Shown here: positions 31,672 to 38,023 of the stretch, piece by piece | How the letters are laid out: every line of letters starts with the position of its first letter | How positions within the stretch are numbered: position 1 is the first letter of the stretch | NCBI GenBank assembly: GCA_020536535.1 | Contig: JAHLWZ010000249.1 | Span: forward strand, 1-54,931 | DNA: 54,931 nt | Source: Pelomyxa schiedti | Taxonomy: Eukaryota; Protista; Evosea | Direction: 5' to 3' | Made by a program: the position numbers and the translations under genes | Notes under the pieces: model-generated | What the model was told of the DNA's origin: nothing | Databases searched by the model: none | What the model saw: the letters and a program-made list of their open reading frames with translations, nothing else

Positions 31672-33954
31672 TCATTCAAAGAATGACAATGGTTTTCCAT
31701 GCAGATACAGGCAGATTTTTGTTATGGTTGGTAACTTAGAAGAACACAGCTCACGTATCTCGTCGACTGTGATTCCAAACCTGTGTATCATGAACAATGT
31801 CACGTGTGGTGATAATGCAATTCCAGGCAGGAAGGTTCGAATGAGGGTGGTGTTTATTGCGTCGCCATAGTGCCTCAGTATCATCTGCCACCCTGCAAGG
31901 TCAATGTGTGGGCCAGGATGGTCAGTGAGCGTGCCAACGAGCTGTTTTCGGTGTTATTCTATGAGTTGGTTGGGGAAGGTGGCGGGGGTACATACATCAT
32001 CCAAGGGAATGTCAAATGTGTCAAGAAGCCACTGTGCACAGCGGTTCTTTCCAGAGGAAAGAAGCTTGAACAAGAGGCCATTGCCATTACTGTTGATGTG
32101 GGAGTACTGGAGGTCGAACTTGCGAATCACCCACTTCACAGTTTTGCTTGATGGCCATGTTTCTGTGTTAATCAGACACTCTCCCATGAACTCTGCTGTA
32201 GGAATCGCAGAGGTATACTCACCCACAAGCTGGAGGAAGTGCTGGAGGATTTTCAGGTCAACCATCAGCCTAACCATAACGAGCTTAATTGTACTGGAAT
32301 TCCATTGACGTGCACATGTTGGGAAGGTTTCCAGCAGGAATATAACAGCATCTGACCGGTTGTTAATGATTAAATGAAAAATGGCATCATCGACTGAGCT
32401 CTGTTTCAAACTCAACGGTTGTGGGAGGTGATGTATGAACCACTTCAAACCGTTCAAAAGAGGCGAACTATAGACAGAGCACAACTCAGTCAGTATGCTT
32501 TCAACGCAACCTGGTTTGGAATTGATGTGATCCATCACGTGGAAGGTGATATCCAACCACTCTGCCACATCAGTGTTGCTCTTCTCCAGTGCTTTTTTCA
32601 GGCCTTTGGTGATGTCACTTGGTGTGAGTGTCACCCTCGTTGAAACCCACTTGGCAAGTGATGAGGAAGAAGAACCGCTTGATGTGCAACAAGCCAATAA
32701 AAATAATTCTGTGGTTGGTGCAAATTCCTTCTCAGTTATCAACCACTCAGCAAACTCCACGTTTCCAAGATGTCCACAGAGATAGCTCAAAGTCCCCTGA
32801 CTTGGGTCAAGAGACAACGTTGTCAGCACCCACTTGGCAACGTCTGGATTGAGTATATCTTTCAGGAGGTTGTCATCAACACCGGCACTTCGGATATCAG
32901 CTTCAAAATATTGGCAATCTTCCACGGATGCATGTGCGTTCCTGAGCAGGCAACGAACTGGTTCCTCCTTGTAGTAAGGCACAGGAAATTTCTTCTCAAT
33001 GAACCACCTTGAGTTCGCAGGGCAACCGGAAATCATACACGATCTAAACAAACTCTCAAGCTTGGCGGTGCCAAGGGTATTCTCCAAGTGAAATTCGTCA
33101 AACAACCATCTGACAATTTTCTGTTTCCCACAGAACCTAGAAAGGGATTCGTACAGCATCCACGAGGCATCGCGCGTCCCAATCCCAAGAACAGATAGAA
33201 GCCACCTGGCCACCTCCACGCTGTCAGAATCACACAGGAGATCAAAAATAGGGATCCCACACGATGCCCTCACATACTCAATCACTCTTCTCCTCAGCAC
33301 ACCAGCACCACCACCACCTCCTCCCACAACAGCAGCACCCCCGACCTCGGCCGCTTTTTCTTCATCGCCATTGCCGTTGCCATTGCCTGCAACAACAACA
33401 CCACCACCACCATCGGCGGCCTTCCACGTGGCCACACGCCTACCGTCCCACAGCATCGGCAACGTGCCGTGCCACTCATCGCCACAGTCTCCCAGCAGTG
33501 CACGAGCGGCCCGCAGGTGGCCCTCCCAACACAGCCCGTCGAGCGCCGCGGCCACCTCCTTCACTGCGATCGCGAGTGTGCGATTGTGCGCCTGACCGGC
33601 CGTCGTGGCCGCCGTGGTGCCTGTTGGTGGTCCCCTGTGGTTGGAGATCCACGCGACGCACGAGGGGGCGGGGGCCCGGGCCGCGAGCGCGATGCAGCCG
33701 TACGTGGACCCTGAGTAGTTACCCGTGAGCGTGCGGGGGCCGCCGAGTGCCCTGCGGCAGGCGAGGGCCACGAGGGGGAACATCGCCTCGGCCACCGAGA
33801 ACACGTCGACGTGGCCCCGGCACCAATCCCTGAGGACTGTGGCGGTGGTGTCGTCGAGCCAGCCGGGTACCACGACCATGTCCCACACAACTCGCGAGAG
33901 GGTAAGCACGCGACCGCGGGCCACAAAACGTTCGCGGACGTCGGTCGCTGACAT
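31672..33954 (-). CDS. Lineage-specific protein with degenerate ankyrin-like helical repeats
   Basis: 666-aa first exon with recurring ..VA.WL / C..G..AEWL units; last exon 31672-~31950. Confidence 0.75.
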
Positions 33955-33955
33955 A

Positions 33956-35828
33956 CACCGGGGGGCAAGTCAAGTGAGAAAAACAGAATTTTTTAGTGAG
34001 CAAGGCAGGGTGAAGCGGCCCGATTTTGCCGGGATTTGTTGATGTTTTGTGCCGCGGGGCGGTTGGCGCGGCGCCGCGGCGGCAGCGCGGCGTGTGTGTT
34101 CGTTGAATCGGGTCTCGCCGCGGCTGCGCGGCCTTGACATAAATGGGTTTTGGTGATTGTTCAGTGGCTTGTGTCTTTTGATTATCGCTAGAACCACAAA
34201 AAAAAATCGACGAGGGGAAGCCATGCCGCCAGTGGTGAAGAGGAACAAGCAGTGGACAAGCAGAACCCATTTGCTTTTGGTTGTCTTCTTCGCCACAACT
34301 TGTTAGCTAATTATTTTATTTATCGGATAAATATTGTGTTTTGAATTTTATTATTTAACGAATTTATTTTTAAATAATTATAATGCATTAACTTCTTTAT
34401 TATTAATTAAAATTATTAATTATTAAGTTTAAAATTATTAAATAAGTATAATTACGCCTCCAGTTCTTTTTTCCATTCAACCTGTATTAGAAGTCTCCGC
34501 ATTACACCAGTATTTACGGCAGCTTTCCACCAGTATGTGGCTTCTTCTTTCTTCGTTTGCTCACGTGAGGATAATTTAGGTGCTGGACGTGGTGTCTGTA
34601 ATCCCAGCTGGCTAGGTAACTTCCTTCTGTATTTTATTATACTGGCGCGGTGGTATGGTTCTTTTTTTTTTTTTACAGTTGCGCCAGCTTCCGAGATGGC
34701 AACCGCCAACGCTCATCCCTCCCCCCTCGTCACCCCACTCAACGTACTAGGTACCAGAATGGGCACCACTCCTCACCTCACACCTCTATGTACAAGCCTG
34801 AAGTCGAAATCGACTTCAGGCAAAAAAAAAAAGTTTTCCACCCTTAAGTCCTTGGATACAAAATCGTGCCTCGTTTTTTTAAATCCACATTTTGGAGAGA
34901 AGTGGGCGTTGTGGGTACGCATGAGAGTGAAAGAGTAAGAAGGGAAATTTGGGCCTGGTTGTGCACCCGTCACAACAAAGTGTGGTAGTTGGAAAGCGGA
35001 AAAGCGGGAGAGTGGGTTAGGGAAGTTGGGGTTGGTCAGTCCGGTACCTACAACTGTTCAGCAATTACAAAAAAGGAGAAGGATGTACGTCGGTGGTTGT
35101 CATGTCAGCAGCAGCAGGCAAGTTGACCACCTAAGTGTAAAAAAAAAAAAAAAGCATACCAGTGTCCCAGCGCTATGGGAAAAAGAAAACAAAGAAACAA
35201 GAAGCCACATACCAGTGGAAGGCTCGGAAATACATTAAAGGGGTGCGGCAATGCTGTGGGCCTTATTACAAGGCGTAAATGCGTAAAAAATTACTTTTAA
35301 TTAAATTAATAATAAATAATTAATAAATAAAATATATATTAAATATTTAATATATGTGGCAAAGGTACCTCGGTTAGAAATTTGGGCTACCCCAGTACTA
35401 TAGCTCTAACCACCCCTCCGCGGCTCCCCGCCACAATATATAAATTAATTTAATTGATTCAGAAATAAAACAATTAATATTAGATGGAACGACGTGATGG
35501 AAGAGACAAGGCGGGTACCGCTTGTTCCTCTTCACCCCAGGGCGGCATGGTCTCCCCTCGTAGCAGCGATTTTTTTGATGGTAGTGGAGATAAACAAAGA
35601 GGCAAGTCACTGCACAGTCTCCACAACCCCAAACATGCCATTTATGTCAAGGCCGCGCAGCCGAGGCGAGACCCGATTCAACGAACACACACGCCGCGCT
35701 GCCGCCGCGGCGCCGCGCCAACCGCCCCACGGCACAAAACATCAACAAATCCCGGCAAAATCGGGCCGCTTCACCCTGCCTTGCTCACTAAAAAATTCGG
35801 TTTTTCTCACTTGACTTGCCCCCCGGTG
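33956..35828. mobile_element. Non-autonomous DNA transposon with 191-bp TIRs flanked by TA (Tc1/mariner/IS630-like)
   Basis: 33956-34146 is the reverse complement of 35638-35828 (3 mismatches by eye); TA|CACCGGGGGGC...GCCCCCCGGTG|TA; AT-rich blocks inside. Confidence 0.88.
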
Positions 35829-36255
35829 TAGCAGAGTGTCGTGACATCTCGTAGAGATTTTTGGTATTGACGGTGGCTACTGATGGCTTGTGTACAAATC
35901 CGAGAAAGAGAACTGGAGGTACTCATCTCCCAGGAGAGCTGCCTGACAAGATTGGCCATGATGTGTATATCGTTCTTAGCCGTACCAGTCGCTGCTGCAT
36001 TCCTCAGTTTGTAGATGTGAATTTATGTGACAATCTGATTGTCTCTTACTTAATTTCCTAGTACGAAGTATGTAGGAGCTAGAAACAATTTGTTTATTTT
36101 GCATTCTTCCCACCTCTCCTTTTTTTCATCCATAAAAAAAATAATTCGTTCTTTTCCATGGCCTGCTGGCACCAGGGTGAAAAACATGTAAAATTTTCCA
36201 AGTTTCACCCCATTTAAATGGGGAAAAAACCAGAACTTGGGCGTTAGTGTTTAAG

Positions 36256-38023
36256 TTAATGGCCAGTGGGTATCTTGTGGGCAACATTCTCGCGGTGTAT
36301 GAGGTGGCAAGTGTCATCCACCAACTTGACATGTTGGTCTAACTTGGTTGCCCAGTCATTGAGCACATCAGAGGCGTCCATTCTCTTCCCAAAGCGGACA
36401 ATTCCGGCGGGTCTGTCTAGGCGGGCGTATATGTCCTTGCTGACAACTGCAATGGAGAGTTTGTCTTCAAGTTCCTCGGGTGTGAGTGAAAGCAGCTGGA
36501 CGAGTCTTTTGAAGGTGATTTGCGTGTAGTAGCGTGCAATTACTCGGAGGTTGTGTGCTATGACACGGTCACGTAGGTCGGACCATGATGTAGAGTTTGG
36601 GTCGCCAGTAGCAAAGACATCAACCTCAGTTATGCCGGGGTCAGTAGCTGTGGGAGACAAAAATTCCTTCGTCTCTGGCCAACTGTTGAAAAAAATTAAC
36701 TTTGGGGAAGTAATTGGGGAAAATAACCTAATGAGTTCTTGTGTGGTAAATTTCTGTACAAGCCAAAAATACTTGGGCAAATCCTTTGTGTGCTTATCAG
36801 AAAGCATTCGGGAAACAATGTCAGCTTGCTCCATGCCGAAATTGGATAAAACTGAATGTGTAACAACGTGTTTTAGAGCTGCTTGCCACTTCAATGGATC
36901 CTAGTCCCGTGTTAAAAGGATTGCGTTTGGAGTTTAGAATACCTGTTGCACAGAAGGTGTATCATAAATATGAAGGTAGCAGCGGCATATCTCCAAGTAG
37001 TTTTTGGAATTCTTGTAGTAAATAATCATCAATTGGTAAAACTTAAGCTTCAATTCTTCCATGTCCTTCTCTAACAATAGAGTTCTGTTAACCTGCAAGT
37101 GGATGAATGGAAAGTGAAAAAGTTGTGATGATCTCACCTTATTTGATAATATGAGACCTCTTACAAAGTCCTGTGTGGCTAGGCATAGCCTCACTTGCTC
37201 CAAAATGAACCTTGTCTTCTCCCTCCTATCCAGACTGCCATAGGTCTCTATTTGTATCTCCTGCATCAATTTACTTGCGGTAAGCTGGTCCCCTTCTTTC
37301 TCGTGAAGTTCGGCAAGAATCTCGGTCAGATTAGCACGTTCCACTTCTACAAAAATTTTCCCTTCAGTAATTCCCAGAAGATTCCGAATAAGATCCATTC
37401 TCTGTTAGGAGGGGAGAGGTGACTAATACAACTGAGAAAAGATTCCGCCACACCGTTGCCTTAAAGGAAGGGTCTGTCATCTCCTTCACAAACAACAAGC
37501 CCTTTTGCACGATGTGCTGAATCACGGTCTTCAATTGTCCGCGTCTCTTGGACAGTAGCAGCAGGTTGTCATTCAGGGCCCTGAAGTGAGAAGGAAAGTA
37601 GGGGGGAAAAAAAGTGAATAAAGAACACAAAAAAATAGTTAGCACACACTTGAAGTCCCTGACCTCCCAGCACAACGAAACAATTGCCAGCGCCACTTTT
37701 GAGGTCTGAGTTACGTCCTCCGCATTCCTAGCGTGCTTTTCCAGCAACAACAATCTCTCCACGGCCTTTGCGAGATCCGTCTTGGCCAGTGCGGAGCACT
37801 CGGGAAGAGCGATGGCCAATTCCGCGTGGAACGCCTCGTCCACAACGCGTTTTTTCGCCGCGCGAGGCACCGCTTTCGGCTTGGGGATTGTCGCAGTCGC
37901 AGATCCAGATGAAGGCGTGTTGGTTGACGTAGTTGGCGTTGTTCCGCTGGCGGCACCCTCGTCCTTTTTGTCGTTGTTGGCATTGTCGCCACTTATACTT
38001 TCGTTCTTCTCGTCTTCCTGCAT
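36256..38023 (-). CDS. RPN5: 26S proteasome lid subunit RPN5/PSMD12
   Basis: LLLLEKHARNAED, LLSKRRGQLK, ITEGKIFVEVERA, QIETYGSL, ILEQVRLCL, RVIAHNLRVIARYY, ARLDRPAGIVRF, HLIHRE. Confidence 0.95.

Follow-up and report, generated by a model that had tools for sequence, protein, structure and literature searches.

The window analysed here, contig JAHLWZ010000249.1 of the Pelomyxa schiedti assembly GCA_020536535.1 over its whole length of 54,931 nucleotides, carries at positions 33956 to 35828 an element of 1,873 bp with a TA on either side and long terminal inverted repeats (TIRs). This element is very probably a non-autonomous cut-and-paste transposon of the Tc1/IS630 (Tc1/mariner) type, recently inserted at the 5' end of the gene Pelo_3206. 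As a kind, the element is ordinary and already known; the family to which it belongs, referred to below as family A, is new and has been active recently.

Architecture and genomic copies of family A

The repeat finder placed the two arms at 33954-34146 and 35638-35830, each of 193 nt with the TA included and 98% complementary, so that without the TA the TIRs measure 191 nt and differ at three positions (98.4% identity). When the element was aligned with its own reverse complement, the symmetry reached further inwards, to 33956-34253 and 35517-35828, with 88% identity across some 314 alignment columns. Inside these arms, three additional mirrored modules, also collinear (34396-34442/35296-35343, 34510-34561/35184-35233 and 34651-34680/35133-35161) surround a unique centre of about 450 bp, the home of a 26-nt hairpin. 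The interior of the family-A element is a decayed mirror image of itself. An earlier description, made from the letters of the window without database searches and called here the sequence-only reading, had reported 191-bp TIRs with about three mismatches, weaker inverted likeness further in and a TA on both sides; its coordinates were confirmed, with the symmetry now traced to about 300 nt.

Six open reading frames (ORFs) of at least 80 amino acids overlap the element, and four of these, of 85-133 amino acids, gave no match in Pfam, while Rfam returned nothing credible over 33800-35320. The element codes for nothing and is therefore non-autonomous. Each half also contains an inward-facing ATG, at 34223-34225 on the plus strand and at 35547-35549 on the minus strand, in the identical context ACGAGGGGA..CC ATG CCG CC and about 268-282 nt from its own tip; the ORFs that start from them run for just 22-27 codons.

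Across the genome, the 193-nt arm gave 41 scored matches out of 142 candidates, with identities of 92-100%, in a search where only the best 40 of the 142 candidates were scored. A 20-nt terminal pattern was found at at least 71 sites in the assembly, and its reversed control at none. A TA stands directly outside 35 of 37 distinct family-A termini. Across 37 distinct flanks the ten bases beyond the TA are without bias and the boundary TA-CAC (the hyphen marking the edge of the element) is sharp, and the copies are therefore independent insertions. Paired termini enclosing elements of 1.6-1.9 kb were identified on contigs C54, C416, C1459, C969 and C1512, together with internally deleted derivatives of 263, 891, 923 and 1,493 bp. 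Internal deletions of this sort typically follow gap repair. Compared end to end with the window copy, the one on C1459 shows 96.7% identity, other copies being about 81% or 71-89% identical, and the 263-bp derivative on C618 matches the left arm of the window copy at 100% over 228 nt; these near-identical copies indicate that family A was active recently. The sequence-only reading had suggested a young and possibly undescribed family. Its youth is supported by these results, and the family is multi-copy, with a TA at nearly all termini.

Conservation is unevenly distributed along the element. Among 30 distinct arms, the majority base at positions 21-190 accounts for 91-100% per 10-nt window, mostly 96-100%, whereas the outermost 20 nt reach about 0.9, with variation in the length of the G run and at some A/G positions, and the interiors, unlike TIR positions 21-190, differ by up to about 29%. 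No exact match of the TIR core was found in public metagenomes. The genome paper of P. schiedti, which describes an assembly of 52.4 Mb in 5,337 scaffolds obtained from seven micromanipulated cells, contains neither 'transpos' nor 'repeat' in its text, and family A therefore appears to be undescribed. As a separate observation, the C618 derivative (C618:7423-7685, locus L001) joins 34 nt of one end to 228 nt of the other, and its flanks are mutually inverted with 95.6% identity over 200 nt; it may lie within another palindromic repeat or be an amplification chimera.

The insertion at the 5' end of Pelo_3206

The minus-strand ORF 31954-33954, of 666 amino acids, corresponds to the GenBank gene Pelo_3206 of P. 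schiedti with a 100% match. This '666-aa exon' of the sequence-only reading is not the whole coding region: a 54-nt intron holds its stop codon, and the GenBank protein extends 89 residues beyond it. The GenBank model comprises 744 amino acids with the N-terminus MSVG, and its 13-nt first exon is joined, across a 756-nt intron, to the acceptor at 33949-33948. The protein shows weak ankyrin matches only, and it belongs to a very large paralog family, for which 630 genomic candidates yielded at least 96 scored matches. Most genes of this ankyrin-like family (31672-33954 on the minus strand in the window; L048-L052 are other examples) are intronless ORFs of about 650-750 amino acids with a conserved N-terminal SRVVWD..GWLD block. 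According to the genome paper, the annotation used PASA with transcripts and the species has 7.4 introns per gene. A search of transcript contigs turned up no match to the 666-aa ORF or to the GenBank protein of 744 aa; in two RNA runs of the same study about one quarter of the sampled words of 32500-37300, taken as a whole, were present.

When the flanks are joined with a single TA, the frame MSRHSA-MSATDVR... is restored, as the sequence-only reading had found, and it stays open for 31 codons upstream. The first ATG of the rejoined ORF lies at 35847, six codons ahead of the ATG at 33954, and the target TA is situated 17 nt past this upstream ATG, which in the longest reconstructed ORF is the boundary of codons 6 and 7. 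The 25 nt ahead of the upstream ATG (ccaaaaatctctacgag ATG TCA) resemble the sequence before the start of the closest paralogs (ccaaaaaa..acgattcg ATG TCA), and because of this resemblance it is considered probable, by comparison of sequences, that the insertion interrupts the coding sequence after codon 6. The claim that the element sits exactly at the start codon thus stands insofar as an ATG abuts it, and is probably 17 nt off, the likelier native ATG being the one at 35847. The abutting ATG at 33954 draws its A from the TA, and the putative duplication of the TA would allow an in-frame ATG to survive beside the element. The host frame is kept only if the element and exactly one TA are removed. 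The features of the locus are collected in the following table.

Table. Positions of the features of the family-A element and of Pelo_3206 in the window (minus-strand gene features read from the higher to the lower coordinate where so written)
Feature	Position	Strand	Basis or remark
Left TA, putative target-site duplication	33954..33955	.	Supplies the first base, A, of the minus-strand ATG 33954-33952
Left TIR core, begins CACCGGGGGGCAAGTCAAGTG	33956..34146	+	Repeat finder and comparison of family arms
Extended left arm, with inward-facing ATG at 34223	34147..34253	+	Self-alignment; arms 88% alike overall
Non-coding interior: collinear mirrored modules and central unique part	34254..35516	.	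Self-alignment, Pfam, Rfam
Central 26-nt hairpin followed by an A run	34796..34821	.	Module common to non-autonomous elements with family-B termini
Extended right arm with mirrored inward-facing ATG	35517..35637	-	Repeat finder, self-alignment
Right TIR core	35638..35828	-	Repeat finder
Right TA	35829..35830	.	
Displaced 5' piece, probably with the native start	35831..35847	-	In-frame ATG (35847-35845) plus five and two-thirds codons (MSRHSA)
First coding exon of the Pelo_3206 model, 13 nt, ATGAGCGTTGGCG then donor GT	34716-34704	-	GenBank; inside the element
Main coding exon of Pelo_3206	31996..33954	-	ORF ATG at 33954; the GenBank acceptor sets the exon start at 33947
54-nt GT..AG intron of Pelo_3206	31995-31942	-	Contains the stop codon of the 666-aa ORF
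Last exon of Pelo_3206, stop codon included	31941-31672	-	GenBank protein 89 residues beyond the 666-aa ORF

A candidate mobiliser and the comparison with known systems

The assignment to Tc1/mariner/IS630, already proposed in the sequence-only reading, is supported by an element of the same genome whose termini are near-identical and which likewise lies between TA dinucleotides. This member of a second family, family B, occupies C449:4892-8052 and measures 3,161 bp, with TA flanks, a 29-nt TIR and an ORF that matches DDE_3 (E 6.5e-12); a weak helix-turn-helix ORF lies ahead of it. The family-B TIR starts TA-CACCGGTGTGCAAA..GAGAAAACAG and that of family A TA-CACCGG(G/A)G(T/G)GCAAG..GAGAAAAACAG; the two tips can be aligned for about 31 nt, beginning with the first base, and 11 of the first 13 bases are identical in the window copy. 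A GAGAAAA(A)CAG block is common to both, and there is no likeness further inward. The weight given to this likeness comes from its location exactly at both tips. A looser terminal pattern, which brought out family B with its ends of the form TA-CACCGGTGTGCAAA, was found at 93 sites for both families together, in comparison with one in the control.

Other elements with family-B ends, of 2.3-2.9 kb, have only the tips of about 30 nt in common with the C449 element and are therefore also non-autonomous; the central hairpin module is common to them and to family A. On C105, a family-B-type end stands at a TA inside a family-A TIR. A family-B-type transposase could plausibly mobilise family A, a proposal to which a chance slightly short of even is given, and the C449-type family is most likely the best candidate for this role.

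Searches for an autonomous member of family A gave negative results. None of the 12 DDE_3 loci of the genome carries family-A sequence, and among those termini without a visible partner that were traced inward, no autonomous family-A copy was found; the ones traced proved to be truncated copies, tips with small insertions, or remnants of 24-49 nt beside ordinary genes. A search of the genome with the mariner profile PF01359 gave no match, but the control genomes were silent too, which makes this negative uninformative.

Some further observations concern family B itself. At C105:1440-1660 (L073) the boundary between the family-B-type end and the family-A TIR falls exactly on the TA of ..CATTTATGTCAAGG.., which corresponds to a nested insertion at TA; the second junction is missing. 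The non-autonomous elements with family-B ends include L044 (C757:43127-45979), L046 (C912:43113-45387) and L045 (C879:56736-61406); the stretch on C879 is an apparent tandem pair, with a diverged relative of family A (74% identity) just past its right end. In the right flank of the C449 element (L043, just past 8052), an outward ATG-started ORF of at least 165 codons begins within about 7 nt of the right TA.

On the reading as a Tc1/IS630-type transposon, a transposase made elsewhere would bind the termini, excise the element and insert it at a TA, which would thereby be duplicated, and the likely source of this enzyme would be the two-gene Tc1/IS630-like family B represented by the DDE_3 element on C449. 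The copy in the window would have arrived recently in the 5' end of Pelo_3206, a member of an ankyrin-like family of roughly 100-600 paralogs, and would there sever the gene body from its own promoter and first ATG. Pelo_3206 would now be either silenced, which would be tolerable in so large a family, or transcribed from within the element.

Family A resembles the Stowaway-type miniature inverted-repeat transposable elements (MITEs) and the internally deleted Tc1-like elements in its TA flanks, its TIRs, the lack of coding capacity, the many copies, the deletion derivatives and the presumed mobilisation in trans by a related transposase, but it is much larger than a MITE (1.87 kb) and differs in its very long, near-invariant TIRs (191-300 nt), and it has nothing in common with its candidate autonomous element apart from about 30 nt at the tips. 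MITEs of the Stowaway type are usually shorter than about 800 bp; the MITE label was rejected, the full-length family-A copies measuring 1.6-1.9 kb and only deletion derivatives 263-923 bp. With the two-gene C449 element of P. schiedti, family A shares TA flanks and termini of the form CACCGG.G.GCAA, whereas the C449 type is about 3.1 kb long and encodes a DDE_3 transposase and a second gene between its 29-nt TIRs, and family A encodes nothing.

The long-TIR Tc1-like elements with inverted repeats and direct repeats (IR-DR), such as Sleeping Beauty, Minos, S, Paris and Tc3, carry two binding sites in each repeat, one outer and one inner. Family A is like them in its TA target and in inverted repeats of about 200 nt or longer; the IR-DR architecture was nevertheless rejected, no second copy of the terminal 30 nt being present in the 320-nt arm, where the best agreement, 14-15 of 30, equals that of shuffled sequences. 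In foldback elements the arms consist of tandem subrepeats and the target duplication is longer; this label was discarded as well, the arms of family A being unique sequence with no tandem arrays and flanked by TA only. Among other anaerobic protists, the Tc1/mariner superfamily is reported in Entamoeba repeats (PMC2657916), and Tc1/mariner elements of Trichomonas vaginalis have been considered in connection with gene expression (PMC4021607), while promoter activity of Tc1-like ends is the subject of a further study (PMC6446368). The likeness consists in the presence of the superfamily and in the idea that the ends may affect transcription of neighbours, and no sequence relationship was found.

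Placement beside gene starts and competing explanations

An enrichment of family-A copies near gene starts is newly observed here. Thirty family-A termini with at least 600 nt of flank were tested for an outward ORF of 150 codons or more whose ATG lies within 100 nt, and nine of them had one, beginning 1-82 nt from the element. The same test gave 3.4% at the TA sites in the rest of the window (binomial p = 5e-7), the null consisting of all 4,827 such sites in both directions, intergenic or not. Genes read outward on both sides of the element at C54 and C1459, and several flanking genes retain 23-82 nt of their own upstream sequence. Ankyrin-like genes adjoin termini in the window, on C45, in the left flank of C54 and additionally, by tblastn, on C467; a MORN-like gene adjoins the C1459 copy, and a related shorter ORF on C315 has 138 codons, under the 150-codon threshold. 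Five of the nine adjoining genes belong to a second large family, named 'DQF', with no Pfam match and at least 105 loci, organised in tandem arrays. This 5'-end enrichment may reflect promoter-region targeting, promoter activity of the TIRs, or survival in short spacers beside redundant genes.

With regard to the 'DQF' family, its proteins are of about 400 amino acids and were counted as at least 105 scored matches among 219 candidates, examples being L067:1178-2413 (C481), L013, L014, L018, L022 and L007. Tandem arrays occur on C1002, C481, C621 and C1419, and contigs C621, C362 and C1149 also carry the ankyrin-like family; BLASTP revealed no kinship between these two flanking gene families. 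In the 'DQF' paralog on C1459 (L008:1693-3039), CAG takes the place of the start ATG seen in its closest paralogs, and the gene may be a pseudogene. For the gene beside the C1459 copy, no identical GenBank protein is on record.

Certain results weigh against the reading as a recent Tc1/IS630-type insertion between codons 6 and 7. The assembly contains the right flank only once, with no uninserted allele, and the flanks of the other family-A copies gave no uninserted match among the loci examined; duplication of the TA, as opposed to a TA within the repeat, is inferred from the family and, more weakly, from the frame. In annotated paralogs 8-39 residues separate the Met from the SRVVWD block, so that both ATGs fit. 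A free local alignment of the termini of families A and B scores about two standard deviations above shuffles. An autonomous copy could also have escaped notice, since many copies are broken at contig ends and scoring covered the best 40 of the 142 TIR candidates.

Another view is that the element belongs to another TIR superfamily with an unknown transposase, the TA being part of the terminal repeat and nothing being duplicated. In its favour, neither an empty site nor an autonomous long-TIR copy was found; it is nonetheless quite improbable, as the TA-CACCGG termini are common to the DDE_3 element of the same genome and the host frame requires the removal of exactly one TA. Introner-like elements have copies inside genes and are spliced out, and the window element might likewise leave the Pelo_3206 transcript as an intron. 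A minus-strand donor, TCAA-GTGAGA, lies 18 nt inside the right TIR tip, and the GenBank acceptor, TGTCAG-CG, 5 nt past the left TA; together they would keep the frame, with a 37-nt first exon of phase 1 that equals the acceptor phase, the outward end of each TIR is pyrimidine-rich, and introns are frequent in this species. Such frame agreement, however, arises by chance in one case in three, no other copy was found in a convincing coding exon, the other copies lying upstream of genes, and 1.87 kb is about 35 times the length of the neighbouring intron, so that splicing of this kind, predicted from sequence, is very improbable. The sequence-only reading had also considered an inversion induced by assembly, and data such as these, from micromanipulated cells and put together by SPAdes in its single-cell mode, are indeed prone to inverted chimeras; a chimeric inversion arising from multiple-displacement amplification of single cells has a negligible probability here and was ruled out by the same structure, with sharp TA-CAC boundaries, at dozens of unrelated loci with independent flanks.

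A different proposal accepts the transposon and denies that it is passive: its TIRs would act as portable outward promoters or donors of 5' exons, or it would target promoter-proximal TA sites, and Pelo_3206 would be rewired, as the sequence-only reading had suggested, rather than killed. It draws on the nine of 30 termini within 100 nt of an outward gene start, on the outward genes at both sides on C54 and C1459, and on TIR positions 21-190, near-invariant beside divergent interiors and a more variable outermost 20 nt. The GenBank model likewise puts the first exon inside the element, followed by a 756-nt intron against 54 nt for the other, in an annotation that drew on PASA with transcripts. 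On the other hand, selection alone could yield the enrichment in a compact genome, through survival in short spacers or beside redundant family members; the control took all TA sites and not intergenic ones, the 13-nt exon may be a gene-prediction artefact, and several flanking genes have retained upstream sequence of their own. Taken together, this proposal is rather unlikely. Its generalisation, in which family A is a mobile 5'-end module that targets TA within about 100 nt of starts or provides an outward promoter or first exon from its TIRs, re-driving members of the large and fast-evolving ankyrin-like and 'DQF' families, is somewhat less likely again.

The reading as a non-autonomous Tc1/IS630-type transposon adds a well-defined, recently active family of DNA transposons to P. 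schiedti, whose genome paper makes no mention of mobile elements, and it brings to light a probable flaw in the annotation of Pelo_3206, whose first exon has been placed within a transposon. If targeting or promoter donation, and not survival bias, were true, this would be an uncommon property for an element of the Tc1/IS630 type, and it would offer a handle on the regulation of large gene families in Archamoebae.

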